A DNA stretch of 61,988 nt, filler included, from Choristocarpus tenellus KU-1152 (lineage: Eukaryota > Protista > Phaeophyceae), in NCBI GenBank assembly GCA_964200185.2. It is 6 parts of 6 records of this genome, joined end to end, with 100 filler letters (N's around TTAATTAATTAA, not from the genome) between each part and the next. Parts side by side here need not be neighbours in the genome. Positions count along the whole stretch, not along the records: positions 9,031 to 34,534 come from CAXNAD020000187.1; 5 more parts are not named here. One strand, 5' to 3'. The notes under the pieces were generated by a model that searched no databases, had not been told where the DNA came from, and saw only the letters and a list, made by a program, of their open reading frames with translations. The first letter of the stretch is position 1. Every line of letters begins with the position of its first letter. Made by a program: the position numbers and the translations under genes. Of the stretch, positions 9,405 to 33,600 are shown piece by piece.

Positions 9405-12400
9405 GTGCGCGAAATCGAGACCATAAGCCCCAGTCACCCAGAATTCTTCCGCCCACAAACTCAGATACTCCATAAACTCTCACTTCATCATTTGCCTCTT
9501 CTCCTGGATATAGGAGAGGATATTAAGGAGGGAATACGATACTACCCTGAACTACATATCGCTGTATCTACCTACCCCCTTCCCTACATATCCTGTGCCT
9601 TGAAGAGGAAAAGAACGAGTCTCTTTCTGTGCTGTTCTCCAGCCAAAAGTTTTTCCGTGCTGGAAATGGAGGTGAGCGTGTCATCTGATAAACACACACA
9701 TCCCTTTTTCAGACATTTGAAGATATAGGTGAAGCAATTCCTTATGAGTGAGCGATCGTCAATTTCATTTTTCTCGTCTCGGAGTCATTCTGGTGTACAA
9801 GAGATGCCCTTTGTAATACAGGCTCCACGCGAAACCATCCCATATCGTTGCCTCGAAAGTGTCACTGTCCCTGACCTAAACAGTTAGAATGTGTTTTTTC
9901 TTCATATCTCACACCAGTCAATGTCCCACCTTCACAATGGGTTAATAACAGGACTTTGAAGCTGTACGTGCCCTGGAAGACGATATCAAGCAGCAGCAGC
10001 TCATACTCCAAGCGAAAGAGAACTTGCTGATGTATCTGCATATTCACTTTGTGCGGAGATATCAGGACCAGTATGATGACTATCACTTTCAGCTCACTCA
10101 ACAACCAAACGACCTGGACTCGTTGAATTTTCGGACATTTTGTGATAAGGAGCTCCTACAGCCTCGCACCTGCGGATCCGTGGACGAGTATCTGAGAGAT
10201 GCACAAGAAGCTAAGCCAAAGTTGGAACGCATTGTGGATTTTATTGCAGCGCGTGTGTCGGCTGATGTGGTTAAGGCTCCGCTGAAGACAAAAGAGAGCA
10301 TTTTACGCAAGGCAAATATGCCTTGGGCGGGCGGCAACCTGCGCCTGGTCACAGATATGGCCAGGATTTCCGTCGTTTGTAAATCAGCGCAAGATCTGGG
10401 GCTTGTGGTGGACCTGGTGAACAGTACCGAGGTGAGTTTTTCCATAATTAAATAATTTTTCATAGGTCGACACTATCCTCTACCATAATGTTTAACAGAG
10501 GAGACTGAGGTATTATCTTCGCCCTCCTTCGCTATATTCTTAGGAGTTGCATGTGAAAAGAGTGAGCAGTGGATTCCGGTTCAGCTACACACCAGGAGGG
10601 TATCGGGATGTGAAAATGAACGTGGTCATCTCACAAGACCATGGTCCGGGGCACCTGTGCGAGGTCCAGCTACATCTGAAAGGTTTCTATGACCTCAAGG
10701 AAGAGTCACACAAAGTATATGAGTGGGCAAGAGAACTGAAGGTCACACATTCAATGGAGGCTTCTCATCTTTTCCGCAACTGGAGTAATGAGGTCACTGA
10801 GAAAATGATCCTTCTTGGGAAGGAGAACTGGTATGGACTGGGGAACACGTTGTCAGCAACACTGCACATGGCTGGAAGATACAAGGAATCAGTGGAGGAG
10901 TGGAAAAAGGTGTGGAAATTGAACTTGTCTTGTTACGAAATGCACAGTTTGGCTTGACTTAATGGTAACATGTGCTCCTGGTACCTTCTGTGCTCTTCCA
11001 GGTACACCAAACAAAACTTGATCAATGGGAGAAAGCCAAGACTTCAGGATCTGACATTCGAAGAGCTGTAATTGCTGTTGTAGAAACAGTCTGTAACATG
11101 GTTCCTTCAGTGATTGCACAAGTGAGGATGAAATGTTAGGTGTACAATATTGCTATGACAATGCATTCCTGCTTAGTCTTGACACTCATTGACATGTGTT
11201 ACAAGTTTGAAAACAACAGCATTAGGTATGTTTTGAAATGTGTAATATTGTGAGGGATCTTTGGGTGGCAAACCGTGCTGAGTTGAGTTTTTCTGTAACA
11301 AATGACTTCATTCATGTTAAGAACAAATGGTAAGGTTTCATATATTTGTAATTTAAAGGCAAATAATTGGCCTACGGTGACTCAATTGTTTCACATGTAA
11401 AAATGTTTTTGCCAGACAACTTAGTTGTTTTCAGTGAATCTTCCATGCCATACCTCCTTTGTGTCAGTACGGACGAGGCTAGAGTCGACCTCCATAGATC
11501 TGATGAAGTACAGTTTTGCTTCATACGATCTATTGATCAAAGCTTGTAATCATCAGCCCTGCGGAAATACATTCTCATGTAGAGATATATAGCGATGACT
11601 TCTGACCAAACTTCCAAACCTAGGCATTAGAAAACTTAACCCACACGGAGATACATCTGATTATTGCTTAATACCTCCTACCCACACTATATATTCTTCT
11701 TTGAATACCCATCGCCAGTCCCCAGCAGAAACTGTTGTGACCCTTCCAGGGTGTGTGCTGGAGGGATGATAATTGAAACTCCTTTACATCTAGTCTTCTA
11801 GGTATCAAATTTTATTTAAAAATAATTCCATGGCATTATGAGGATTGATGATTGCGATGCCTTTGTATGTCCTTTCGACATACCCATTAAAGCTTGCTCT
11901 GGGCCTTCAAGGGTGTGGTTAGTGTTAAGGCTAATGTAGATAAGGTGAACGCCACTGCAAAGCCGACCTCTAAATTAAACCCATCAACCTTTTCAAGATA
12001 AAGTGCTCTAACATTTCGAGGTTTTTGTAGATGATGTACTGTTCTTCCCCAGAGATTAAGATATCTTGCAATCAGGAAGAGATAGGCAAGAACGTTTTGA
12101 ACAAAACAAAGTTAATGACCTGTTAATGACCTGTGCCCTGATGCTACACGAGTTAAATGTACAGTTCACATAGTACAGTTTCTGTGGACAAGTAAAAGGT
12201 CTGAAGTAGATAGAATAGGTAGTGTTCCTTGGTCTGTTTTGTTGTAAAGCTTTGAAATCTGTATCTAGTTGTACATCACATAACGAGTTACCTCTTGAAA
12301 AAATATTGCACATTTTTTGTGTCACCAAAGATGTTGACAGTAGATTGCTTGAAGTTGTCGTTGTGAAAAATAGTTCTCAGGTAGATGCGTTGTCCATGAC

Positions 12401-14015
12401 AGCATGAATATTAGGGAGCGCATTAGTACAATGCATATTTCCAAAAGAAGACGGACAGCCCTACATCAACACGATTGTATATTCCCCATCAACTATATGC
12501 AGTAGAATATATCTAACAATTATCACCAATGCTCCAATTACAATTACGATCTACTAACATATCCCCAAACTTCCCCTTTTCTACATAGGGTAAATACGAT
12601 GAAGCTGCTAAATTGGTCACTACTTCAACCAAGATGACAGATGAAGTTAGCATTGGAGAGAGACATCCTTTATCTGCAATGATGACTCAACGTCATGGAG
12701 AGATACTGCATGAAATGGTTTGTGAAACTAATATTTATCATGCTGAGGTTTGACCTGACAATAGATGTAACGTTTGAACGACCTGACATAAAATAAACTT
12801 CCAGAAACTTACGGATGACATAGTTGGTCCACTAACATAAAAGCTTAATCTCTTTGATTATGCAGGGGAAACACGGTGAAGCTGAGACCCTCCTACGTAA
12901 GGTGATCAGAATGGGTGAAGAAACGTTGGGATCAAGTCACCCTAATGTGGCTGGCAGGAAGGGAAACTTGGCTTCGTTGCTTCAAGATCAGGTGAGAATG
13001 TGAATGGTTTGTAAATATTGTAAGTGTGGTTGAGGATGAGACACAAGAAGAGGGCATAACGATGAGATTTGCAGTAGGTGTATGGAGGCTGGGTGATGTA
13101 CGTCTGCATTTGTGGAATGGTTGTAGTGTGTGGATATCCAGTGTGAAACAGGCGTGTGTTGAAAGAAGGATGAAAGTACCTGTATTTGGTGAGTCACTGA
13201 GTCTGATTTGTATGATGCACTGACATGTGTTGCTTTTTGGCTTTAATAATGCAGGGTAAATATGCCGAGGCGGAGAAACTGTTTCACGAGGTGATAAGGA
13301 TTGTTGAAGAAACGTTGGGATCAAGTCACCCGCATGTGGCTACCGACAAGGGAAACTTGGCTTCGTTGCTTGAAGATCAGGTGAGAATGTGAATGGTTTG
13401 TATGTAAATATTGTAAGGGTGGTTGGGGATGAGACACAAGAAGAGGGCATAACGATGAGATTTGCAGTGGGTGTATGGAGGCTGGGTGATGTATGTTTGC
13501 ATTGGTTGAATGGTTGTAGTGTGTGGATATCTAGTGTGAAACAGGCGTGTGTTGAAATAAGGATGAAAGTACCTGTATTTGGTGAGTCACTGAGTCTGAT
13601 TTGTATGATGCACTGACATGTGTTGCTTTTTGGCTTTGATAATGCAGGGTAAATATGACGAGGCGGAGAAACTGTACCGTGAGGTGATAAGGATGGGTGA
13701 AGAAACATTGGGATCAAGTCACCCTAATGTTGCTGTTTGGATGAGAAACTTGACTGGTTTGCTTAAAGCTCAGGTGATAATGTGTATGGTTTGTATGTAA
13801 ATATTGTAAGGGTGGTTGGGGATGAGACACAAGAAGAGAGCATAACGATGAGATTTGCAGTAGGTGTATGGAGGCTTGCTGATGTACGTTTGCTTTAAAA
13901 GATGAGACTCATTATTTGGTGGATATTTTTAGATGTTGAAGGATGTTTACGTTATTAATGTCTACATTTAGTTTTCATTGTCTTTTTGGGCATACAGCAA
14001 GATGTCGAGAAATAA
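9405..14015 (+). CDS. Multi-exon gene: RelA/SpoT-synthetase-like nucleotidyltransferase domain plus C-terminal TPR repeats (5' end unresolved)
   Basis: In-frame phase-0 GT-AG exons 9952-10431, 10544-10909, 11002-11121, 12589-12717, 12866-12991, 13255-13380, 13648-13773, and a possible terminal exon 13998-14015 (QDVEK*). A possible upstream exon ends at 9671. Motifs PLKTKESILRKA, VTDMARISVV, GGYRDVKMNV and HLCEVQLH occur in the order of the RelA/SpoT synthetase motifs. Repeats such as GKYDEAEKLYREVIRMGEETLGSSHPNVA...NL..LL..Q are kinesin-light-chain-type 42-aa TPRs. Confidence 0.8.
12866..13895 (+). repeat. Tandem exon+intron array (~390-bp unit: 126-bp TPR exon plus ~265-bp intron), three exons plus a truncated third intron copy
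   Basis: Unit starts at 12866, 13255 and 13648; introns 12992-13254 and 13381-13647 are nearly identical; 13774-13895 is a truncated copy. Confidence 0.95.
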
Positions 14016-14379
14016 AGACATGGAGGCATCGGAAGGTTAAGAGGTGATTGTTTTGGTCGGGGTGGTATGGAGGTGACCTTCTCGGCTACTGTTGATATTT
14101 TTGAGTGGTGGACTTGAAAGGAGATGGGGTGTGTGTACCTATATAGTGGAGCACGTGACCTCAGGCACTATCTACTGTTGACACAAAGTAGATAGTGCCT
14201 GAGGTCACGGAGTGAATTTGTATTATCACCTTGACATTTTGCTGTTGCAGGCTTTTGGATTGGTTGAAATGTTGCTTTTCTTTCCTGCTTGATGTAAAAA
14301 ATTTCCCAAGTATAAATATTGTGTTATGTTTGAAGGTTGCGATAATCACATGCATGTGATGAATGAGTTAATGCTTTCT

Positions 14380-14690
14380 TCAATAGAAATTTGCTCTCAG
14401 GCTTACCTTTGCCCTTTTCTTGCCACCAAGGAGAATGTTCTGAGACTTGAGATCTCCATGTACAATCTTATTGGCGTGTATGCACTTCATGCCTCTTACC
14501 ACATCCAAGATTATCCTTTTCCTATCATCTGTAATAGACCCAGACTCCCAATACGATTCATTTTTGAGGAATGTTCTTAAGTTTTCACCTGGTAAAAATC
14601 TGTCACAATGACATGCTCCCATTTCCAATAATCAACAATCATGAGGCAGATAAACGTAAGGAAGACTGAAAGTCAAAACTTCGGACCCTG
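14380..14690 (-). pseudogene. Isolated, inverted paralogous exon of a TKL protein kinase
   Basis: FLPGENLRTFL...ILDVVRGMKCIHANKIVHGDLKSQNILLGGKKRAK matches exon 26607-26813, including flanking intron sequence (GTTGATTATTGGAAAT upstream, GTAAGCCTGAGAGCAA downstream). The acceptor region is altered and no other intact kinase exons were seen nearby. Confidence 0.8.
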
Positions 14691-15237: not shown

Positions 15238-15410
15238 GTGACCAACCAGTGCGAACCCCCTTCGCCACTGATTTTCTGTCACAGCCCATCTCCGATGACG
15301 AACCAGTGCCAACCCCACTTCGCCCCTGATTTGCAGTCATCACCCCCCACATCTGATGACAAACCAGTGCGACCCCTTCGCCACTGATTTCCAGTCACCA
15401 CCCCACCCTT
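15238..15410. repeat. Degenerate ~60-bp minisatellite (about 3 units) followed by C-rich low-complexity DNA
   Basis: Recurring GAC(C/G/A)AACCAGTGC...CTTCGCC(A/C)CTGATTT...CA. Confidence 0.75.
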
Positions 15411-17418
15411 CAACCCCACCCAACCCCACACCACTTACCACTGCAACACATCAATTCAACACCACTCCTCCCCACAACACGTTCCACCACTTTCCACTTC
15501 CCCACAACATTCAACATCACTCAACCCCCAAACACTTTTCACCACTTTCCGCTTCCCCACACCGGTCAACACCACTCCACAATCATCCTAGAACACCCCT
15601 TCATCATCCACTTCATACTGTGCCTTTGAACTAGAAGGCATCTACCTCGCCCGAACTGGACCTCCCCCCCTTACCCAGAAACCCAGTTGGCCATGAACAA
15701 CCGAAAGGGTGGTGGGTGGGAGAGATTGCTCAGAAGTTGTCTTCTTCTAGCCCTGCTTGTCCTGTACTACTGACCTCAGGTTTTCCTTACGTTCTGACCA
15801 TTCCTTCCTACCTCGTTCTTCCATCTACCACCCATTTCTTTTAACTTCTCTCCTACCACTTCTGCCTCCTAGCCACTCCGTACTTTACCCTTTTTCCATC
15901 CTTCTTTGCTGTCTTTCTTATTCCATATTCAACCCACCCTTCCCTAAAGTCATTCTTACCAGAATTCTCCCGTCTGCAAAACTCAGATTACTTCATAAAC
16001 TTCCATTGTTCATGTCCATTTTCAGAATGTGCATTCTATAGCTGAGAAAGGTTAGGTTAGGGTTAGTACTCCAGTAATTGATATAGACGTATCATCTTTA
16101 ATTATGTGTTTGTTCAATACATAGATCTTCCCAACACATTTCCATCAATTTGGCAACACTTTTGAATGAACGATACCTATGATTCATACGAATCTTTACC
16201 CTATACACACAATCCAACAAGATTTCCTGACCCAAGCTTTGACTAACAAACAATTTCCAAATATATGTGAGAGCCATCTTCCAAAGAAGGTGTACCATTA
16301 AGGTAACCTATCTTGAAGACTGATATTCATACGACATTTTTTTTTGCATGTTGAAGGTAACATCTGTTTGAAATAAATAGCGAATGGTATGACGGGACCT
16401 TACAAACCCCCCTCATTCGCTTTCCACTTACTCTTCTTTCCTGAGTAATCGAATAATGGTTTACTCATGAATACTAAAATATAATTATCAAGGCAAATTA
16501 TAATGCTTTTCCAAGACATCCCTACCTTCTTACCAGGAAAATACTTCCCGCCTCCCCCCTCCCCCCGTTCTCACAAGAGTCCCTACCTGGAGTCTGGCTC
16601 TTCTTGTCTCTCTCCTTATTCTACTCTTTCCCTTCTGCAAATACACATTTATGGTTATCGGACAAATATTTGGTTTGCTTGTCAAAAGGTCACCACATGG
16701 TTTACATATTCTCCATCATCATTTGTTTTGTGTTATGAATCATATTATATATATTGTGTTATGAAAAAATATATTGTTTTACATTATGATCAAGATATCC
16801 AATTCATAGACATACAAATGGAGAAGTAATATTCTCTTTATACGGCAATTTTCATTAATTTGTTTCTGGATCCCAAGATGATCTTCTGAGGGATTGCTTT
16901 TTTTTTGTCGTCTCTTTTCATTTTCTTGCCTCTTATGGGTCTTTCAGATTCCCTTTAGTCTAAGGAACCTATCGGATAGTTATTTGGTTTTTCCTCTCAC
17001 ACATCTCCAGAATGTCCGAGGGCTAAATAATATAATTATACCTGGAGTACAGGGATCAGTTTGTATAGAATACCAAAAACGTCTACTCTCTATATACATG
17101 AAGTGTTTAGGGAGTTTGAAGAATTGAAATATTATTTTCCTGTACCATTTTTTCCGTCTTTCCCCTCAATCACGAATTTTTCACCATACCTACCAACTCA
17201 CTCATCGATAGATGACGATAGATGATAGATGATTATCACGTACCAAAGGGGTACAGTCAACAAGTAGATTCTACATAAATTGCATTTATTGGTGTCCTGG
17301 GGCGTGTGGTTGTTCTTGTTCACAGGCGATCATGGAGACGGCGACTAGCAGGTTGGAATCATCTCAGAGGGCAGGTGGGTTGTTTTGATGGTGTTTCAGG
17401 TCATAGGTTGAGAAGAAA

Positions 17419-20400
17419 ATGGCAAATAGAGAACAGGAACTGATGAATTTGGTATCGCGTTTGTCGCTTGTTGCCCTTCACTTCTCGATGACAGCCAAGC
17501 AACGGGAGATTCTTCTCGATTTCTATGCCTCCACGAATGGAGGTTCATGGAACAACAAAACGGGCTGGAACTCCAATGCCGATAACCTGGCAACGTGGTA
17601 CGGGGTAAGAGTCGACGATCAAGGATGGGTGATTGAAATTAACCTTCGCGAGAATAACCTCAAAGGTGAGATTTGACTGTCATGTTTCACATTCCAAATT
17701 TATAAGGTACATGTCCATTTCGAGACTGCTCCTACGAGGGTTGGCTTCATACTTGCGATGTTTCTATGAAAAGGCACAATTGTGTTGACTCGCTCATTGA
17801 GCTAGTGTACAGATGTGAATAATCAAGGAGAGCCAAAGTATGTTAGAGGTTAGAGCCACGCCCATTTGGGGGCAAGAATCCAATGTTGCGATTTGGATGT
17901 AATTTTGGCTATCGTGTTTGTTGGGAAGTGTCAGTATCCTTGTTCCGGACATACCTCTTCATAACGTATGCATTTTACCTACTCTAAAACAATTTGGAGT
18001 AGGAAAGTGTCATAAAAAAACCTATGGGAAGCCAAGCCCCAAATGGATAAACAGGGCAAAACTCGTACCCTCTAAGATACTTTCAATCAGGACTTCCCAC
18101 TGGACATATGTGCATGTGTGTTGACTCATTGACCAGTGTCTGTGACGCTACAACCACATAGTATTGGTCCAGGATTTTTCCTCCTTAGTGATCGTAAGAA
18201 GGGATGCCGTATGTGTACATTACGTGGCACTTGACTTTTGTTATTTTTGAAGGTCACTGATGCAGCGTGTGCTAGCATCGCCAAACCCGTTTAGTAGGTG
18301 ACAACAAATGGATTTATGAGGCGACGCGAGCCCTCTTCTTCTAAGGTTTAACCTGTGAGATATTTTTGTAGGGGAGATGGAACAAAAGCTGTATTGTAAG
18401 GTCTGTTGTAGTGGAGTAGAAAAAACTGTACAACTAAGCAGTGTCAAATCTGAAATATCTGCACCTTTTTGTTGTTGTGATGTGTTTGGCATCTACCTCT
18501 GGAAAACGACCTTCAGGCTTTCATGTATGTTTTAGGTTTTTCGTGTTGTAAGTGGTGACTACGAAGTATCTCGACTAAAATATTCTTGAGCAGTATGTTT
18601 TGGGCAGAATGTGCACTAACGATAAATTGATGTCCCTATTTTCATCTTGTTTATTGTTATGTGAGGTAATAATAAGTAAAATATGTTGCGTATGTACTAC
18701 ATATTCCATGAAAGATATTTTGGATAAATCTTTCTTTTTATGTCTTGGGGTTAGCTAAACTCTCCGAAGAAAAACCTTTTTACTCTGGAAGTTGGGTAAT
18801 CACATTCTATTATTGCTCAGAGATAGCAAAGTATCATTATTATGTTTCTATTCATTAAAATGTATTAATATGAATTCCCAAAGTCCGAAGTCATAGGACA
18901 AAATAGGAAACAAGAAACATGAACATTTTTCAAATCGAAACTTGCCTGAAACAACTCCAGCCCGGGCATTCTTAGCGACCCTTGTGCACTTGCTCCTCTT
19001 TTCATAGATGGCAAACTCTCTTCTCATGCTTGTGTGCGCGGCAAAGATGACGTGTAAGACTTTTTGTTTCCCTGTTTGCCCTTTGCCAACCGCGCACCGT
19101 ATTACTCTTTTTTTTTTTCACTTTCTGTTCTCTACCCCCTTCCCCCTGAGGCTACACCATACCCTGGCACTCTGTGTTGGGGCCTTCAATAATCTCTGTG
19201 ATTCTAAAGGACTTGATGAGTAGAGGCACATTGATATTTTGTCTTTTTTTATTCCCAATGACATTTACAACATTGCGCTTTTTAGCAGGTCCAGGTACCT
19301 CCCGGTGATTCATAGACATAGAGAACTGATGCCCCTCAAGGTATCGTCCGTAGATGTGCCAAACTCAACACTCTGCACAGTTAGGGTTAGATGTGATGGA
19401 CGGAGTAGTCAACCTAGCCTGTTCTAGGCGTCCTCTTGATGCATGCCTGCCGGTGTTGATAACACTATTATTATCACTACTAGTAATGCTGCTACCCCTG
19501 TCTCTACAATCGTCGCTACCTCTATCCCTCTCACTGGCATTTTCATTACTTCCAGTATCTTTGCCTTTGCTCATTGCAACCAAATTGTCTGTACTCAAAG
19601 TCTACTTACCAAGGATGAAAGTTTGTGTTCACTGAACTTCGGGTTATCACATTTCGTACAGGAGTTGATGAGTGATGATCATAACGAGTGGATTGTGAAA
19701 GTGAGGCATTGCCACACCAAAACTACAAATCTCCTCAGGCACCCAATAGTATAGTTACATTTATTTTTAAATTTTAATATTTTCAACAATATAACAGAAA
19801 TTTGTATCATCGTAGTCCTCCACCTGAGGCGTAGGCAGTGATGTTGCTGTTCATATTATGTTTGGTGCTTATAGTAGTAGTGTAGGATACAGGATAAAAG
19901 TAGAGAAAAATAGGTGGAATGGCCATAGTGTGGTTGGACTGAGTGTAAAATATAAGGTACCTGACCAGTCATAGGTATAATGTTCAAACATAGACAAGTC
20001 CATGACTATACCTCACTGAACACGACATGGGCAGCTGGCTGGCCATATTTGACCAAGTTCAATCATGAATGAATCCATGTCCATCAGTTGTTTCGACATA
20101 TGACTGCTGATTGGCCTGTGGCCGTATAGCTGACAGTGGGGATGCTAAGTTCCTGATTCGATGATAAACCAATACTGTGTTCCTCTATCAAGTTGAAACG
20201 ACTTTTTGCGGCAATATCTATTTTATTTCATTTTACAAGTTGACTTTTAAGATGTTAATGGTCAATGCTGTTAACATAGCATGAAGTGTACTGAATATGT
20301 AAATTAGTGATGAGTGTCAAGGAGAATATAAATACATTTTGTGTATGCTCTAAAGGTACTTCAACCATCTTTGTGAAAAGGGTATGATGATCTTGTGTAT

Positions 20401-23400
20401 TTAAAGCACTTATTGATCTCTGATGTGAAATCAGTTTGTAGTCACTCTTGTCTGTAAAAGGAGTGATATCAAATCATCAGTACATGACTTCTTGATTCGT
20501 ACAATGTATCTGAAGAAATGTCAATTTTCCAATAGGGTGAATAATACAATTTGTAAGAGGAGTTCTGGTTAATATTTCTTGTGCAGAATATATTTTTTGA
20601 CGATCTAGAATTGCTGACAGGAGAGTGTTTGATGTACTGCGCATGAGTATTGTTGTCTACCTCAAGCTGATGTTTGTACTGGACAAGAGTCTAGAAATGT
20701 TAAGTGGGGTTTTATTAATCACTACACCATAGTTCAGCAACTATTTTGTATGTGCTAGCTCCACTATTTTTCATAACCTTGCCTATGGCGTTGTTGTACA
20801 TAGGTTGAGTCAGCATGTTTAGTCAGTCTGAGCATAGAATGTACTTGATAATTTGTGATTGTAAGAACAGAAGTGTTGTGTTGATGATAATATCCTTTGT
20901 CACTCCACTTTCGTCAAAATGTTGTTTTGTGCATTGTGAAACCTGAATGGCGTTCACAACTGAACTTTGTCCCTCACAGGGACTGTCCCCGAAGCATTGG
21001 GCGACCTGCCCGCCCTGCGGCAACTAGATTTGTCCTTCAATCAGCTCAGTGGTAAGTCTGAACTTGTTGATTTCTTTCATTTTGAAGGAATCTCTTTTTT
21101 GTTGACTTTCCTGTTGAAGTACCCTAATGTTGTTGAAAATGTTGATTTTCCATCTGTACCTTAAAAATGTTTGACTGGTGCAATATAGAAATGATTCAAT
21201 CCCATTTTTTTTCACTAATAGAGCTGCATCATTCTGCTTGGTTTCATGTTGATTAGTTTCAACATCAGAAGTTTTGACAGGAGAGTGTTTGATGTACTGC
21301 ACATCACACTTGTTGTCTACCTCCAGGTGATGTTTGTATTGGACAAGAGTCTAGACATTTTGATTGGGGTTATATTACTCACAGCACCATAGTTAAGCAC
21401 GTTCTTTGTTTTGTGCTAGCACTATTTTTCACGACCTTGTGTATGGCATTGTTGTAAATAGGTTGAGCCAGCATTTTTATAGTCAGTCTGAGCATAGATG
21501 GCAATTGAGAATTTGCGATTGTAAGAACAGAAGTATTTTTTTTCTGTATTCTTTGCCACAGGATATTTGACTGTTTTTTTTGTGTACTTTTTGTTTTGAA
21601 TGTATTTTGTAACTAACGTTTTTCCTCACACGGTCTAATTATCAAATTAGCAAGCATCCTATCTTGTTCTTTGAGTTTTCTGTAGTTTGCTTAGTTATCT
21701 CTTGGAAATTTTTATGTTTGTAAGTGTTATTTTTATTTTGTAGGCCAATTTTATATGTATATATATAGTGGTGAGTTACCTTCTTTTGTGCAGTACTTTG
21801 TCAATACGTAGAATACTTTCTTCTTATTGGTATAGTCCATTAAATATTTTTTATCTCAATGTATGGTTAACTTTCGTTATAGGATGGTGTGCTTCCTACT
21901 TGTTTGTATGTGTAGTCACTTTCTGATAGTGCCTTCATTGAACTCCCAATGTCTGTTCCTAACCCTAACCCTAACCCTAACCCTAAGCAATTCCCTCTTA
22001 TTGTTTTGAATACTGTTATCCTAATGTGTAGATGTACATGTATGATACTAACGAAGAAATCTCTCAAGACCTTTTTTGTTCTCAATAAACATGATAGTGT
22101 TTCTCTTCTATCCATTTTGTTCAGGATAATTAACTCTAGCCCCATCTTTCTGGATCCTTATGTTTGGTGTTGCCAGTGGTATGTTTGCCACATGGATACC
22201 AATTTTCCTTAGTGTCCTTTTGTGATTGTATCAACTTGCTTCTAGTTGAAGAATAGTATTCAATTGGGAACTCTGTGGTCTGTACTATTTATAACCAGTT
22301 CCACTGTGTTCTTTTTTCCAGAAAAGCAAATGCTGTCGCTTGTCATCCTAGGGTCCTTATCTCTTAAAAAATATGGTGTTTAATCTGCTGGTGTAATTTT
22401 CCAGGTGTGCTTGTGGAGGGTGAGACTCTTGTATTGAGAGAGGGTCCTTTTCTGCTGGTCATCCACAATGATGATGTGAAGAAGTTTCGCATAGAGTGCA
22501 GCAAGGTGTTGTCTGAATTGGAGAATCTTACGCAAGATTGTTCCTCATCTGTTTCCGAGTCAGTGAAACAATTGGTCACTTTTGTAAAGGGGCACGTGCT
22601 GCGTACAATGGAAACGGATGAAGATGTGGGTGCTGTCCTGTCTTGGTGTAACAGTTCAAATGCAACGTATGTTTTTCTGATTTATTTGATCTTACGTATT
22701 TGTCAAACAATAGTTTGATGATACAAATTGTGATAGTGGTTGGATGAGAAAAATCATGTGAATGCTCGTAGAGATTGAAATGCTACAAGTTCATCAGTTG
22801 TGAATTGTTTGATATGGAATTTTTGTATTTGAGAATGCACAGATCGAGATATTATTTTGAGATTAAAGCATATTTGGTACATTAAATTAGGTTGCACTTA
22901 CTTGCAGTTGAGGTATTTATTTTTTCTGTGGAGATTGTGTCATTGTCTGTCTTCAGTCAAGAAGTACGATTTTTGTGAGTGTGCTTTGATCTCTTTTGTA
23001 ATTAGGCAAAAGTTGATATTTATACTTTACATGTAGTTGGACATTTTTTTAAAACCCTTGATCTGATATCATAAGTGTATCCCTAACCCTGCACATGCTC
23101 TATCTGTCCAATTTTTAATAATGCTTTGAATTAGGGTATTGATATGTGTCTATTATGTACAACTGTTTACATTATTTTTTTATTGTGATTCAGCATCATG
23201 TAAATAGATTTTTTTATTTTGTTGTTGTGCTGACATAGTAAAAGAAAAATCAAGGGTGGGCCTCACCGAGGTTTTTTAATGCTTAGCCATGAATTTGTTC
23301 AGGGTACAATGTTATGATCCTATAAATGAAGCACGTCTTAAGATAGAGGTGAGGGTGAAGCTTTTGAGAATGGATCCGAAGGTTTTCCAGAGGTCACCAT

Positions 23401-26400: not shown

Positions 26401-29400
26401 TGTTAGGTGTATGTGGACTGACATTGTGGATGCTGCTGAAGTAGCTTGACCTCTTTTTTATGATGTATACTTAATTCATAAAGTATGTTGTACACATGTA
26501 TGTTTTGTTTTAGGGCTACGGTTTGATAATGCCTTTGGCGAAGTATTAATACTCAGACTTTCTTACACATCTCTGCCTCTTGGTTGTTGATTATTGGAAA
26601 TAACAGTTGATTATTGTGATGGAGTTTTTGCCAGGTGGGAACTTGCGAACTTTGCTCGATAAGGGTTTGTGGGAGCCCTGGTCTATTACAGGAGTTCAGG
26701 AGGGGTTAGTCCTGGATGTGGTTGCAGGCATGAAACACATACACGCTAACGGGGTCAAGCATGGAGATGTCAAGTCTCCTAACATTCTCCTGGATGGGAA
26801 CCGAAGGGCGAAGGTAAGCCTGAGAGCAATGTGTATGGAAGGAAAAATTGATTGGGGTAATATATTTATTATTATTTGTTACTCCTACACATACAAATGT
26901 TACTATTTCAATTGGATAAACATCTGCAGTACCATGAGAGGTCAGCCTGTGGCCCAGTCTGGTTACAATCTTTATGATCATGGTTTGGTTCTTCTAAAAT
27001 ATATGGCCCATACTGGCCTTCAACCTTGTCTTTCCTTTATAACTTCAGTACTACTACAGCTCCGGTCTGGTTATTTGAAGACATCCTATATGTGATTCCG
27101 TCAGTGGCCTGGTCTAGTTATACTCTCCGATAGCACTGAATCGTTCAAGTTGAGGAAATTTGTTTTTCATACTTTTGTGACTCCATTAAGAATCGAACAT
27201 ACACTCTTTGGTGAACATTAGAATTGAAGAGTCCCTTTCCAATATAGCATAGTCAAGTGTTTGTATAATCTAACAAATGTACTTTTTTTAATGATTATTA
27301 TCGAGTTGTGAACATTCAATACCCTCTGACCATGTTAAAAGAAAAAGTTTACCAGGCCAGACTGTAGTCATGTGTAGTCTCAATCTAAATATCATCGACT
27401 TTGCGCTATTGAGACATTTGGCATAGGTCGTACACTAGTCTGATCTGGTTGTTCTTTCTCCTTGGACTGACTCCTTAGAAACTCAGTTTACCTGGGTAGC
27501 CCCTGTGCCCATTCCTTTTGTGTGTACTAAGTGAGGTGGAAAGTCCTGGATGAGTCAAGGTTGGATACAGGTTGGAAGATCCACTCTATATTCGTTGTGT
27601 CTATACTTGAGAATATGAGTGATGAATATCAATTTTAATGAAAATATATTTTTTCCTGTTCTTGTGCTTCGGTAGTTCAAACCCTAACCCTAAAACAACC
27701 ACATATGTAGGGTGGCATTACAGACTTTGTGAACCACTACTGAAATGCAGTTTTTCGAAAACATACGCCCAATCCCAACACTACCCATAACCATACACCA
27801 AAGTGTGTATGAAAAATATCCCTATCTACTTGAGGAAACAATCTGTAGCAGTATAGTGTTCACTGGGGAACTAACACCTCTCAAGGATATACCACGTTTC
27901 ACTTTTTCGCACACATTTTTTGAAAACCTAGCCCTAACCCTAACCCTGACCTGTGTGTGAAGAATAACGGTAAGCTTTATTTGAAGGAGTGAACCAAATT
28001 TGACAGGGGTGTTTTCCCAAAGACGGGGTTCTCCACTATGCACTTCAACATGTAGTCGTTTTGTGGTGGATGCCTGTTGTATCCAGTTAATGTAGACAGA
28101 GGCGAAGTTGGAACTGATGCGAAGAGTTTGGACTAGACCCTAACCCTAACCCTGCAAGAGGATCTGTATGAAAATGAAAAAAACTGATATGAAAACATAT
28201 TTTCCTTTTAAATACATAACCTTAGAATGTTACCTTTCTAGGAGCTTTCATTTGTTCAAAAAAAAAATCCATACTCTCATTTTCTCTTCCACATGGATAT
28301 TTTTGAGTGGAATACCTCTATTCCTTTTTTGATAACGCAAATCAAAGATAAGTTGGAGCATTGATACTCCCTCTGTTCCTAAGTTTGCAACATTAAGAGT
28401 TTTTACCTCTAGCTTTGGCTGTTTCTTCACGAATATGAAGTCTTCTCTACAAGTGGTGTGGCTCAAGATTAAGGTCTGGTTTTCAGTGGCTGCACTGCGC
28501 CCTGCAGTGGGTACAATGCCCCCCCTTTGTCACGCAACATCTCTGCACCTCCCTCGCCAAGAGCCTTACGAATCTCGTTTAGCCTCCAGACCATCTGTGA
28601 TGCAAGTTCAGTAGCAGCAGGGAATTGCATCAATCACAGAAGCGGCCTCAACAGTATTCATATCAGCAAAACATGGTTACACCTTATCTGCAACAGATAA
28701 CGTGTCCAAATGTTCCCCAGGGATGAAGGGTGGGCTCCACCAATGTACAGGACGATGAGGCGTTTGGCGCACAGATCCTTCCCGTGATACAACGGCAAAT
28801 CGTAATATGGCGTGTTTGTGTCATCCAGCGGGCGCACAGAATTTCACCCAGCCACGAGAGGGGGCAGTAGTACGACTTCAATGTGAACATAAATAATGTG
28901 AACATCGATGCGGAGTGGTAATGGGAGTGGTAAGTGAAGACTTTTCTCCCTGTATTGAAGAACCAACGTTGTGGTTGTAGGGTGAGGAGGTGGCTGTGCA
29001 GCAGGATGGAGCAACCCTAACCCTATGTGAAAAGACGCACCGTGGAAGCTCAACAAAGTCGGGAGAGAGGGGGGTTTGAACGTGAAGCTGGTGATACAGC
29101 CTGCGCGGTCATTTGATTTCAATATCAACAATTTAGGTTTCTGAAGAGTAGAGTTTGGAGGGAGTGTTATGGTGCGATAAATGACCTTGTGAAGGAGGTA
29201 AAGAGTAAAGAGCATCTACATACAAGTACAACGCAGCTACTTTGGAGAGGATGTGGCAGAACCTCTTGAAGCGTAACAATCTAGTTTTGAAGGCGCTAGG
29301 GGGTATTTATTTCGAACAGCCAGCATGAGGGAAGTCGCTGAAATTGGTCAGAATCGATAGAGGGGCTTTCGATTTGGCAGTGGATTGGTGGATTGGTTGG

Positions 29401-30641
29401 CATAAGGAAGGGACAAAGAATGATTTTCACGTACACACATGAAGGACATCAATATAAAAAAAAACCATTTTTAGTGTAGGTCATCTGGAGAAGTTACACC
29501 ATTATCGTCACAGACTACCCGGCTATTATGTTGTTACCATCTCCTTTTGTGTGTCCATTGGGAGGTTCAAGCAGGGATTACAATTTCTTCTTGTGCTTGA
29601 ATTTCAACTGGAGACATGAATTAATTTAAAGATATTTGTGAACTCTTTTCACGAAAAAAAATGTATTTTTTTGTGGTGATTTTTTCTTCTTCACTCTTTT
29701 TATTCTCTTTATAATATTCTGATTGTTAGATTTGTCTTGGTGAAAGAATGGTAAGATGAGAAAACGAGAGATCTGAGGTCAAGGTCTTACCTTCTACCGT
29801 GTCTTTTTAATGGGAATATTCGGAGATTGTGCAGTGAAGGTGCATCATCGTAGACTATTGGTCGTGAACTATGTAGTTTTTGTTGTTTTAAAGATAGGTA
29901 GTAGTGTGAGACATTGTAATGATCTATTGCATTAACTTTTACTTGAAGTCCTATTTTATGCTCCATGTGGAAACTTGTATTTTTCTTTTTCAGACCTGTG
30001 GCCTTTATTCATGACATGTCGTTGATGCTCACTTCTTTGTGTTGTCAAACGGATGTTTCCTGTTATTAACCTTGCAGGTGGCAGACTTTGGACTTGCACA
30101 GGTTGTAAAGATCACCAAGAGCAGTAAGTTGGAGGAGGCAGGAGGGGGTTCTGCACCATGGGCAGCTCCAGAAGTGTTAGATTGTAACCAAAACAGCAGA
30201 GCGAGTGATGTTTACAGGTAGAGTGAGAAGAGTGTAGAGCCATTTTTACATCTGTTAGAAGAAAAGGGTTGCAAGTGATCTTGCTGTCCTGGAACTATTC
30301 CTTACAGGCATGATAGATGAACTCTGCTTGCCCTTCACTTCCAGTTGTCCGTTTTGGAGAAGTTGTAGGATTCTGTGCAACGCTTACCCTGCTAATCAGC
30401 TAGTCCTTCATTGCATGCTCGTAAACACAGCTTTGGCATTGTGTTGTGGGAGATACTCACCCTGGAGAAGCCTTGGGATGGCAAGGAAGTCGAGGCAATT
30501 TGGTGTCAGGTATGTCTGAAAGAACAGCGCCCTCCACTGCCTACAGCTTCGTCTACAAATTCACGTTTCAAGAAAATTATCTCGAAGTGCTGGGCGCAGG
30601 ACCGGAGGGACCGGCCTACATTTGAGGTGTTGGAGGACCAG
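17419..30641 (+). CDS. Probable multi-exon LRR - helical region - TKL-family protein kinase gene (middle exons and 3' end unresolved)
   Basis: Exon 17419-17665 is an LRR N-cap (LLDFYASTNGGSWNNKTGW...ATWYGVRVDDQGWVIEINLRENNLK). 20980-21051 is a 72-bp LRR exon (GTVPEALGDLPALRQLDLSFNQLSG). 22405-22666 joins in frame. Kinase exons: 25262-25381, 25683-25760 (IGRGGFAK), 26203-26388 (AVAK), 26607-26813 (HGDVKSPNILL), 30078-30217 (VADFG...WAAPE...SDVY), 30431-~30641 (SFGIVLWE...CW...RPTF). The kinase part is secure; continuity through 22666-25262 is not. Confidence 0.7.
17830..18088 (+). mobile_element. MITE family A in the first intron of the LRR-kinase gene
   Basis: Family A sequence and TIRs; flanked by AGGA / AGGA. 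Confidence 0.9.
20608..21534 (+). repeat. Pair of ~265-bp direct repeats (about 20608-20873 and 21269-21534) flanking the single LRR exon
   Basis: Both run from TGACAGGAGAGTGTTTGATGTACTGC through GGACAAGAGTCTAGA to GATTGTAAGAACAGAAGT. Confidence 0.9.
21958..21985. repeat. Interstitial telomere-like (CCCTAA)n tract
   Basis: CCTAACCCTAACCCTAACCCTAACCCTA; shorter tracts near 16050, 24807, 26108, 27925, 28137 and 55822. Confidence 0.85.
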
Positions 30642-33600
30642 GCAAGCGTCTATCCGCTCAAGAGGTCTCATCTGTTGCTTGTTGCTTGTCTTACTTACTA
30701 CTCTCGTGGTATTCCTAACCCTGATGATTTCAAGGGAAGGAATAATTTCTCACATCCATTCGATTCTTGTTCTATTCTGTGCTAGCTGTTATTTCTAAGT
30801 GGTTTGCAAAATGATCCACATCATCAGTTTGATTTTGGAGCCAGTTCGAATTGTTTTCACTCAAGTCTTGCACCAACACGAATCTGCCTAATAAATTTAA
30901 CTACTTACCCCCCCACCTGACAAGAAGAGAAGCCTTGGTGGCTGCACATTTTATTTTCGATTTCAGGTCATAATTTATGGTGGTGCAGGTTTAATATTTG
31001 ATTTGTAACACTGTACCATGTCTGTATTGTCTTGTTTTGCAGTGTAAATAACTGTTTGTGAGCATTATTTTTTGGAACGCCACCATACTATTTTTCTTGA
31101 TCTGGTGCTTCTGTGATTTATCAACCCTGCCTTATGCCAGCTCAAAAATGCGATGACAAGCTTTCATTGAGGAATGCCTGGAAAGATGGAATATGCAGTC
31201 CTCCACAGTGCAGTGGCAACAGGAAACCTGGACCCTATTACTATTTGGTATAACTAATGGCTTGCTGACAGGTTACACACTCTTGTCAATTTTGTAGGGG
31301 TTACGGTAGGAGACATCTTAAATTTTTGTTCTACAAGGGCCTTGGTGTCCAATGATTGGCGTGGTCATGATAGAGAGAACAAGGGAGTGGGCCGCCTCTG
31401 TGATATTGAAAGTCCCAAAGATACTGGAATTGTATTGTCTTGTACGCACAGGGTAGGCGTTGGGAGTTTGATTGCTTGTTGGGTTGAATGATGTTGAGGT
31501 TAAAACAAATACCAACCCCGAAGAGTGATAAAGCTGCTGGTTGAAGTTTGTTGGCACAATTGACTGCTGAGGTCAAAATTGTGTGTCCTTCAAAACTTGA
31601 AATGGTTTAGAGACTGTGATTTTATGCGATTTGCCGAATGGAAAGGATTTGACATGGTTACAATAAAAAAGTGAAGTGTTCATGGGAGAGTCGATAATGG
31701 GGGATACCATTGAGAGATGCGTCTTGTAGTCATTCGCTTCAGTTCCAGAGGTTGAGTCAAGATATATTTGTGATAAGGGCGATGACGGGTGAATTTATGT
31801 GTTTTTGGAAATAGGAGTGTCAAGCTCAGTGTGGACACGTGCTGGCTGATATTCGCTGGGAAATGTATTTTGTAACGTGCTTGTGTGTCTAGCATACAAC
31901 ACTTGTATGGTTTCGTACTACATGTTGGATGTTGGTTTAGCTTTCGTTTCCTCTTCTTGTGGGGACATTCCAGCTGAGGCTTGGATGAGGTCGAAAGTAG
32001 GGACATGAGGTTATCTCTTCATTCAGTGAGGTCATGTTTTTGCTGGGGGATTGGTTGAGAAAGGAGGTTTTAAGTGGGCAATGTAAACGATTAACATTAA
32101 GATACATATTGGATTAAGGTTTCTGTGTATGAAAGATTTTTAGCAGTTGGCTTGCTTTTCGTGTTCTTTTTAATCTAGACAAGTTTGGCAGTCTTCGCTG
32201 GTTTCATGCATTTTTTGTTGCTCCTATTATTCTTGATGCGGCATCTCTGTTGCTTTTCTGATTAATAACCAATGTTTTTGAAGATGAAAGTCAATTCCTA
32301 GTAGTTCAGGATTTGTGTGTGATTTGTGCCACACAGTATGTAGTGCGCTTGGCATTTGGTACATGATGATGCACAGGGTCAAGGTAGAATGCAACATCGT
32401 CTGACTCTTTCTTGGTTCCAGATACGGCATTTTCGAATAGGGAGGTTAATCCATGTGTTGAATGGATATACGAGGGCTGTAGCCATTTGGTATGGACCTA
32501 TAAAGCCGGTCTCCCCTGCTTGCACTTCAGGTGAATTATTGATTCATGTGTGTGGAATGTCAGAGTGTGTCTCCCGTTTACAACCATGGACTTCTATATT
32601 CAACAATTTGCATCAGAAAATAATCCAGTGAATGACCCTACAACGACACATGGGAGGATGAAGACCAAGATGAGCTCATTGAGATATGCTGTGTACTGGA
32701 CTTCATGGTACACGAATTAATTCAGGATTACGGTTAGGGCTAGGTTAATCCAAAATTGTCAAGTTTATTCAGTAAAACAAATGGTCTTTTTCCTTCTGCA
32801 ATCTATATTACGAACGTCCACAGACATAACAACAACTGACTGCCAAGATTGTATTTACAATTTAGATAAAGAAATAGATACGACAGAAAATGCCCTAAGG
32901 GGAGATTGGGTGGTGGTACAGAGAGGGGAAACAAGACAGAAATAACCATTGCACTCTAAGCTACAGAAACAATCGAGCAACCTGGATACGTTTCCAGATT
33001 GTGACATCACGACGGGAGGAAGGAGTGAAGCCAAATATTGTTTCTGGTGTAAAAACACTTCATCGGACACATGGTCCACACCAACTCTAACCCTAACTGT
33101 TACCCCAGGAGATAGTGAAAGCAAACAACAGCAACCACAACAGGAAATGTAAAACGTCGATGCAACCTTGCTCGCTTAGGAAACAAATCAATCTTTTTTC
33201 TTTCCAACCAATCAGTTACGTTCAAACACGACTATACACTTGCTCTACACATTGCTATGGAAACTGGTATCATCCCGTTGTATCCCCTAGCACTGGGGGA
33301 CCGTGGCAGACAAAAAGGTAAATAGTGATTGGCGTCAAGACTCAGCATAGGGTTAGGGAATGAGGGGGAGATATTATTATACTTATTGAAGACTAAAGTC
33401 ATGATAGTGATTATGATAATAACATTAATATTAATGACATAGGAGTAACATGAATTGTTTAAAGAAATTGATGTTTCCAAGACTTGTGTATGCAAGTAAC
33501 TCGATTAATTCCTTATTGTGTAGAACAGATTGTAGATTAAATAGGGAAGGTGAAAGGAGGAGTGGATATTCAAGCCCAAGGGGGGGGTCCTTGCCAACAA

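Follow-up and report, generated by a model that had tools for sequence, protein, structure and literature searches.

We describe here a gene of Choristocarpus tenellus KU-1152, a brown alga from one of the earliest branches of the group, in which a RelA/SpoT-like enzyme domain is joined directly to an array of tetratricopeptide repeats (TPRs). The gene lies in a joined stretch of 61,988 nucleotides taken from this genome (GCA_964200185.2), which we call the window, and positions are counted along the window unless another contig is named. This nuclear gene is intact and expressed. On balance, and by analogy with the bacterial defence protein CapRel, we favour the view that its product would be a single-chain sensor-effector, consisting of a RelA/SpoT-fold pyrophosphokinase head and a ligand-binding TPR array. 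The fold, the repeats and the design principle are all known; what is new is their combination, in a new lineage.

Gene structure and expression

The locus is situated on contig C187, which supplies positions 9031-34534 of the window and belongs to an assembly of 164 Mb in 27,310 contigs, with 40% G+C. On the + strand from 9952, seven exons make up one continuous open frame, each with a length divisible by 3 nt and all in phase 0, and by sequence reading every intron flanking the exons of 9952-13773 runs from GT to AG. Contigs of three public runs (X1, X2 and X3) were compared with positions 9600-14100. In X1 and X2 introns and exons were covered alike, which is DNA-like behaviour, while X3 was RNA-like, with zero depth across the 1467-nt intron; the kind of run that X3 represents is not on record, and its RNA nature is inferred from this zero intron depth and from its spliced contigs. 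These cross six junctions (10431/10544, 10909/11002, 11121/12589, 12717/12866, 12991/13255 and 13380/13648), all of them GT..AG, at contig depths of about 180-480, and the database fragment P0069 spans the exon 1/2 junction exactly. Since the spliced contigs of X3 join all the exons and P0069 crosses the first junction, the splice model that the preliminary description had drawn from the sequence alone, with seven exons spliced in frame between 9952 and 13773, is correct, and the six junctions and the zero intron depth in X3 show that the gene is expressed. The coding parts, all on the + strand, are as follows.

9666-9671, +: coding end of the first exon, ATG GAG, with its GT donor at 9672 (X3 depth about 410, like the other exons)
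9952-10431, +: exon 1, 160 codons; helical N-terminal region and first half of the RelA/SpoT-like domain
10544-10909, +: exon 2, 122 codons; second half of the domain, then a helical TPR-like stretch (X3 junctions)
11002-11121, +: exon 3, 40 codons; helical linker (X3 junctions on both sides)
12589-12717, +: exon 4, 43 codons; degenerate TPR-like unit beginning GKYDEA (X3 junctions; homologue matches in tblastn)
12866-12991, +: exon 5, 42 codons; TPR_10/TPR_12 (TPR_10 E=1.4e-7, 31.8 bits; X3 junctions)
13255-13380, +: exon 6, 42 codons; TPR_10/TPR_12 (TPR_10 E=2.9e-8; X3 junctions)
13648-13773, +: exon 7, 42 codons; TPR_10/TPR_12 (TPR_10 E=1.4e-8; X3 junction with exon 6)
13774-13800, +: possible read-through tail VIMCMVCM with a stop at 13798-13800 (uncertain, from reading of the frame)

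The ATG at 9666 is the first in the open frame of the upstream mini-exon (ATGGAG followed by gt), and a loose end of X3 at 9672 continues into exon-1-like letters. The N-terminus read in this way, ME-DFEAVRALEDDIK, can be aligned to that of full-length homologues, such as MAFDIDKLIRLEAELK. The mini-exon and the seven exons together amount to 493 codons plus a short tail, and the protein of about 493 residues is predicted to be cytosolic, because its acidic N-terminus is, as judged by eye with no predictor run, unlike a signal or transit peptide.

At the other end, exon 7 is the last coding exon found in the window, and no further TPR exon was found downstream of it there. The depth of X3 is low after 13827, and an X3 contig ending at 13774 continues with AGGACTTGACGGGG, which are the letters of the terminal mini-exon of a paralogue on contig C3537. 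That mini-exon encodes EDLTGNKD and a stop, and AGGACTTGACGGGG matches C3537 and two other contigs. The similarity between the window and C3537 ends at 14369, just before an inverted kinase-exon fragment; the contig may be rearranged near this point, or the X3 contig may stem from the paralogue. Whichever holds, read-through or an exon absent from the contig, the ambiguity concerns only about 8 residues. A further X3 joint, of low depth (5.7 vs about 200; window 12986-13645), is a jump from exon 5 to exon 7, consistent with a minor isoform that skips exon 6 or with the transcript of a paralogue.

It is hardly credible that the gene model is an artefact, with the enzyme and TPR exons belonging to two neighbouring genes, or the copy being a dead one. 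The C3537-type terminal exon is indeed missing here, and some paralogues are broken, but the spliced contigs of X3 join exons 2-3, 3-4 and 4-5 with a depth comparable to that over the enzyme exons, every exon is open and in phase, and full-length homologues elsewhere carry the same fusion. The enzyme and TPR exons therefore sit in one transcript, and the two-gene artefact, largely refuted by the contigs that link them, was rejected. Nor is there a hidden exon between 10909 and 12866, because the RNA-like X3 junctions leave no room for one. Pfam gave no match to NB-ARC, NACHT, ROC or HD in any exon or in any of the homologues scanned, and this, with the X3 junctions, upholds the earlier suggestion that the enzyme is fused directly to the TPRs with no NB-ARC or ROC domain between them.

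The RelA/SpoT-like domain

Synthetases of the RelA/SpoT homologue (RSH) superfamily carry ordered motifs, namely a basic K..S...K, a metal-binding Asp, a G-Y loop, E-x-Q and H..Y. Four motifs of this kind had been pointed out in the translation before, and all four are present in the order given, with their coordinates now fixed; we add a fifth, HKVYEWAR, so that five catalytic-type motifs follow one another in RelA/SpoT order:

10285-10311, +: KTKESILRK (exon 1 translation)
10354-10374, +: DMARISV (exon 1 translation)
10595-10609, +: GGYRD (exon 2 translation)
10658-10675, +: CEVQLH (exon 2 translation)
10709-10732, +: HKVYEWAR (exon 2 translation)

In our reading they stand for the basic motif that binds ATP, the Asp that binds metal, the Tyr loop that stacks the acceptor, the catalytic Glu and the H..Y motif. 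In 140 relatives, conservation of GYRD, ExQ and H..Y..R is 90% or higher. Two of the motifs, the first basic one and D-[ML]-A-R, resemble those of Tas1, an effector of the type VI secretion system of Pseudomonas aeruginosa that makes (p)ppApp (PDB 6ox6), rather than the small alarmone synthetase (SAS) RelQ.

All sequence searches used single exons as queries, unjoined, which lowers the Pfam score of the window's own domain. A phmmer search with exon 2 against 1.84 billion representatives found 142 relatives, 50 of them at E<=1e-10. Among the distant relatives, 6 of 67 match PF04607 (RelA_SpoT; gathering cut-off 27 bits) at E<=0.001, the best at 8.8e-10, and one of these, P0044, reaches 33.6 bits, above the cut-off. 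The domain is thus tied to the RelA/SpoT fold by transitivity, because the relatives of exon 2 include PF04607 matches such as P0044. Searched against solved proteins, exon 1 alone matches Tas1 (6ox6_A, E=1.1e-3, residues 83-147), the sole solved RelA/SpoT-fold protein that it does match. A mainly brown-algal profile, A4, meets Tas1 at E=1.4e-3, with KAPLKS.ES..RKA...GD.R.V.DLAR aligned to KAPIKSRERAMQKI...GDPTKIKDLAR, and in a wider profile that includes non-algal relatives, A2, the match to Tas1 strengthens to E=1.4e-17 and is joined by RelP/YwaC at E=5e-5. For exon 1 and profile A4 the alignment with Tas1 is limited to the N-terminal half of the domain.

The fold was modelled on P0004, a 405-aa protein of Ectocarpus sp. 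CCAP 1310/34 and the closest homologue with a complete N-terminus, which is 39% identical to exon 1 and 49% to exon 2. The AlphaFold2 (AF2) model, built from a 100-sequence alignment, has a pLDDT (predicted local distance difference test) of 88.7 and a pTM (predicted template modelling score) of 0.79. The top 30 PDB matches of Foldseek for this model are small alarmone synthetases, an exported SAS and Tas1, and CapRel and Rel appear from rank 34 on. Superposition of the P0004 model with VIA-align gave the following:

Bacillus subtilis SAS1: Z 15.3, root-mean-square deviation (rmsd) 2.8 A over 152 residues
SAS2: Z 14.3
CapRel: Z 13.0
Tas1: Z 11.7
Long Rel, RelA and SpoT: Z about 10
Other nucleotidyltransferases (pol mu, pol lambda, terminal deoxynucleotidyl transferase (TdT), RsfS): Z about 8

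The homologue thus has an alpha/beta synthetase fold that can be superimposed on the solved Rel and SAS enzymes, and the RelA/SpoT synthetase fold put forward in the preliminary description holds. Chance is excluded by the 142 database relatives and by the fold match. We regard the domain as a divergent member of the RelA/SpoT fold and probably an active enzyme.

Two weak likenesses of the head were recorded besides. NCBIfam gave matches at E of about 2e-4 to 3e-2 between the extreme C-terminus of XopAD/skwp and both P0004 (162-272) and exon 2 (residues 25-72), which hints that these type III effectors of plant pathogens may carry a related RelA/SpoT-like domain at their end. Residues 37-126 of exon 1 (10060-10329) bear a weak likeness (E=3.6e-4) to plant type III polyketide synthases, namely to the N-terminal helices of olivetol or chalcone synthase, through a shared DY.F..T...F...CDK...R.C, most residues of which are missing in other family members, and this likeness is probably due to chance.

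The repeat array, its family and a proposed mechanism

Only about 75 helical residues precede the RelA/SpoT-like domain. The preliminary description had read the part behind the domain as a helical linker followed by four TPRs. The linker stands, and the count becomes three clear TPRs and a degenerate one: exons 5-7 lie above the Pfam TPR_10 threshold (31.8-34.9 bits vs 27.5), exon 4 has no TPR match in Pfam and exon 3 matches no Pfam family, and the end of exon 2, together with exons 3 and 4, is helical and TPR-like without a family match. By their PDB matches the repeats are of the kinesin-light-chain type, and each is encoded by its own 126-nt phase-0 exon. This is the exon type of the NB-ARC-TPR candidate receptor genes of Ectocarpus, in which a 42-residue TPR unit is carried by each 126-nt phase-0 exon and pseudo-exons and variable unit numbers occur (Zambounis et al. 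2012, PMC3341825). The agreement extends from exons 5-7 to the 393-bp tandem units of the window and to the units of C3537 that contain TAA stops, and the same genome holds, on contig C301, an NB-ARC followed by 42-residue TPR exons, so the one-repeat-per-exon likeness noted earlier is sustained. The head, in contrast, is RelA/SpoT-like here and not an NB-ARC ATPase, and membership in the NB-ARC-TPR class was rejected for want of an NB-ARC. The units form a tandem array:

12900-13893, +: exon-plus-intron units of 393 bp, 2.5 copies (Tandem Repeats Finder (TRF), period 393, 90% matches)

In the three tandem units of the window the introns are 94-96% identical and the exons 77-80%, and both synonymous and non-synonymous differences are raised in the exons. 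Over nine TPR units from two loci (window 12866-13896; C3537 2419-4656), conservation is highest in roughly the first 60 bases of the intron, and variation is greatest at codons 27-37 of the 42-residue unit. These codons fall in the first helix of the next repeat, and in TPR proteins it is the first helix of a repeat that lines the concave binding face. The pattern fits exon diversification, shuffling or cassette exchange on homogenised introns, as far as the sequences tell. Given the variable repeat number, the broken copies and the greater divergence of exons than introns, the TPR units turn over rapidly, in a receptor-like manner. The copies of the family in the Choristocarpus genome are:

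C187: the window copy, intact
C2257: 58% (exon 1) and 69% (exon 2) identical to the window copy
C7333: 36% (exon 1) and 40% (exon 2) identical to the window copy
C7871: stop codons within the exon-2 match
C3537 (L009): 94-96% identical from intron 1 on; at least 6 TPR units, two with TAA stops

No exon 1 was found within 2.5 kb upstream in C3537, which is a partial duplicate of the window gene and whose terminal mini-exon letters also occur in X3. The Choristocarpus tenellus protein P0001 maps, intron included, onto C2257. Elsewhere in the assembly is a canonical, intronless RSH open reading frame (ORF) of 745 residues with HD_4 and RelA_SpoT (L013, C18857, 857-3094), which may be algal or may come from a bacterial contaminant contig.

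All the named close matches are from brown algae, namely Choristocarpus tenellus, Discosporangium mesarthrocarpum, Pylaiella littoralis, several Ectocarpus species, Laminaria digitata and Ascophyllum nodosum, and all are labelled 'unnamed protein product'. A word-based homologue search with the P0004 domain likewise found eight close proteins, brown-algal only. The survey of the architecture located the domain together with a TPR_10/12 array in the scanned proteins of Discosporangium, Pylaiella and several species of Ectocarpus; those of Laminaria and Ascophyllum (the latter a 1011-aa cluster member) are known by name only. On these sequences, the layout is conserved across brown-algal orders, from Discosporangiales to Ectocarpales. 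Other relatives, for the most part eukaryotic and metagenomic proteins without a name, combine the head domain with LRR (leucine-rich repeat), ankyrin, SAM, EF-hand or ubiquitin modules. In one case the domain lies at the C-terminal end of a protein of 2115 residues whose annotation reads SPP1 gp7 family phage head morphogenesis protein, and members of this family can carry C-terminal toxin domains. The preliminary description had known of no characterised example. As to the literature this stands, since no describing paper was found, while database homologues exist in number and the layout is no one-off. The full texts searched, which do not take in all journals, contained no paper linking RelA/SpoT with Ectocarpus or stramenopiles besides a survey of fungal NLRs (NOD-like receptors), and such a class goes unmentioned in Zambounis et al. 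2012 (PMC3341825) and in the Phaeoexplorer preprint.

Several known systems share part of this design. RelQ/SAS1 and RelP/SAS2 of Firmicutes have the same alpha/beta synthetase fold (rmsd 2.8 A over 152-157 residues, for the homologue model) and the same order of five motifs, but identity is 12-18%, the algal domain falls under the Pfam family threshold, and these synthetases form homotetramers and have no repeat array, while the algal domain is preceded by a helical N-terminus and followed by a TPR array in the same chain. Tas1 and the algal family have KAP[LI]K[TS].E....K...D[ML]AR in common as well as the fold, yet Tas1 is a bacterial toxin that is secreted and paired with an immunity protein, and the algal gene is eukaryotic, with a predicted cytosolic product that bears TPRs. 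Plastid RSH proteins (RSH1-3, CRSH) share the superfamily fold but carry an HD hydrolase, a targeting peptide and TGS/ACT or EF-hand tails. No match to HD, TGS or ACT was found in the exons or the scanned homologues, and the architecture is unlike that of plastid RSH, as had been supposed; with no HD domain and an acidic N-terminus, an identity as plastid RSH was rejected. In fungi, NLRs with an N-terminal RelA_SpoT effector domain and superstructure-forming repeats (TPR, WD, ANK) have been described (Dyrka et al. 2014, PMC4986451), which combine a RelA/SpoT head with repeats as here but have a NACHT or NB-ARC between the two, where the algal protein has none.

The closest parallel in design is CapRel, a tRNA pyrophosphokinase (PDB 7ztb/9erv) that, like the algal protein, consists of an N-terminal RelA/SpoT-fold head and a C-terminal domain in one chain, with no NTPase switch. 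In CapRel a toxic SAS (toxSAS) head and a sensor tail share the chain and are activated directly by a phage protein. Its C-terminal part is a small zinc-finger-like antitoxin/sensor domain and ours is a TPR array, CapRel is bacterial or prophage-borne, and no sequence-level similarity to the algal gene was found, so that the likeness is one of design and not of membership. Even so, it is most plausibly like CapRel that the algal gene would work. The head would move pyrophosphate from ATP onto the 3'-OH of an acceptor, which could be a nucleotide with adenine or guanine as its base, so that (p)ppApp or (p)ppGpp results, or else the CCA end of tRNA. The TPR array would bind a protein ligand, and would either hold the enzyme off until that ligand appears or recruit the enzyme to it, and the output may be growth arrest, ATP depletion or translation arrest of the cell itself or of an intracellular invader. 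A role in defence, or as sensor-effector, would be a reasonable reading because of the analogy with CapRel, Tas1 and the fungal RelA_SpoT NLRs and because of the dynamics of the family. A bolder version of this may also be entertained, tentatively: a brown-algal family of single-chain immune receptors that lack a nucleotide-binding oligomerisation domain (NOD), in which hypervariable TPRs directly gate a Tas1/toxSAS-like pyrophosphokinase, and the ligand would trigger either (p)ppApp synthesis, with ATP depletion, or tRNA pyrophosphorylation, leading to abortive death of the cell or to arrest of an intracellular pathogen.

One could instead picture a regulatory or housekeeping enzyme of the alarmone type, which makes a cytosolic (p)ppGpp-like signal of stress or growth and uses its TPRs as a scaffold for docking chaperones, motors or a fixed partner. 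Kinesin-light-chain-type TPRs do often bind fixed cargo peptides, and a layout as old as the span from Discosporangiales to Ectocarpales, present in few copies in this genome and structurally closest to the true (p)ppGpp synthetases SAS1 and SAS2, would suit such an enzyme. A fixed scaffold, however, is not what the array looks like: repeat number varies between near-identical paralogues, broken copies and pseudo-exons occur, and exons have diverged more than introns with the variation focused in one helix. By sequence the closest solved relative is the toxin Tas1, and for alarmone metabolism canonical RSH genes are present elsewhere in the genome. We therefore consider a regulatory enzyme rather unlikely.

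Against the single-chain sensor-effector, several observations have to be set. Exon 1 scores 15.1 bits against PF04607 (E=0.029), under the 27-bit cut-off, exon 2 alone has no RelA_SpoT match in Pfam, the full-length brown-algal homologues reach 16.8-19.2 bits, all of them below 27, and a six-frame scan of the genome with PF04607 misses the C187 locus while detecting four other places, one of them an ORF with HD_4 and RelA_SpoT. Exon 2 alone finds no meaningful relative among the PDB sequences, and hhalign of profile A4 against the canonical RSH ORF of this genome gives a probability of 1.8%, which is insignificant, though the alignment still places GYR..ExQ on NYR..VEVQ. The fold model is that of the homologue P0004 and not of the window protein. 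Residues flanking the motifs are non-canonical, with GYRD-K vs GYxSxH and ExQLHL vs ExQIRT, and the substrate, or even the activity, could differ as a result. Beyond the head, TPR arrays also serve as plain scaffolds, none of the PADLOC defence models match, some 4-5 family copies in the genome are few for an immune repertoire, and no counterpart of the C3537 terminal mini-exon (AGGACTTGACGGGG) was found in the window.

Part of this list would agree with a pseudo-enzyme, in which the RelA/SpoT fold is kept as a nucleotide- or protein-binding module without catalysis: relative to the canonical motifs, Ser and His of GYxSxH are replaced by Asp and Lys and Arg-Thr of ExQxRT by His-Leu, and the Pfam scores are sub-threshold. 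We regard this as improbable, since the putative metal-binding Asp, catalytic Glu, stacking Tyr and basic residues are all kept, and conservation of GYRD, ExQ and H..Y..R at 90% or more over 140 diverged relatives is typical of an active site under selection.

Surroundings of the gene and its bearing on brown-algal biology

A group of pieces, protein-kinase fragments among them, adjoins the gene on the same contig:

14383-14628, -: kinase-exon fragment of 82 residues, apparently an inverted duplicate of the 26607-27095 exon
17419-17676, +: further piece of the group
26607-27095, +: exon resembled by the inverted fragment
30411-30785, +: further piece of the group

The group includes an ORF that resembles an LRR N-terminal cap by eye, with no Pfam match, and a PK_Tyr_Ser-Thr C-terminal exon; together the pieces are probably an LRR-kinase gene, another candidate receptor class of brown algae. 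Three repetitive elements were also seen. Positions 13979-14250 belong to a very high-copy element, with a summed contig depth of about 15,000 in X1 and 9,600 in X2 vs 20-90 in the flanks; it contains a 22-bp perfect hairpin (inverted repeat at about 14153-14209) and resembles a miniature inverted-repeat transposable element (MITE). In X1 and X2, the DNA-like runs, contigs are interrupted at about 14030. At 21958-21986 lies an interstitial repeat of telomere type, (CCTAAC) x 4.8, or TTAGGG on the other strand. Degenerate, C/A-rich tandem repeats of 55-58 bp occupy 15239-15577, and the ORFs there are of low complexity, rich in Pro, His and Thr, and suggest no function.

The RelA/SpoT fold is known from the alarmone synthetases of bacteria and plastids, from bacterial toxins (Tas1, toxSAS, CapRel) and from fungal NLRs, whose heads of this type are unexplained. 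In brown algae multicellularity arose independently, and very little is known of their immunity. The gene bears on a question raised in 2012: into what do the shuffling TPR and LRR exons of these algae feed? If the immune-receptor reading is true, the shuffling TPR exons would serve more than one effector head. If the sensor-effector reading is true, the theme of bacterial defence modules reused in eukaryotic immunity would be widened by an enzyme class and a lineage, both new to it. Should the defence reading fail, a eukaryote would still possess an alarmone-type enzyme in its cytosol, which is unusual in itself. The candidate is testable in Ectocarpus, which is genetically tractable, and, should the immune-receptor reading prove true, it would be the first eukaryotic counterpart of the CapRel-type defence of bacteria.

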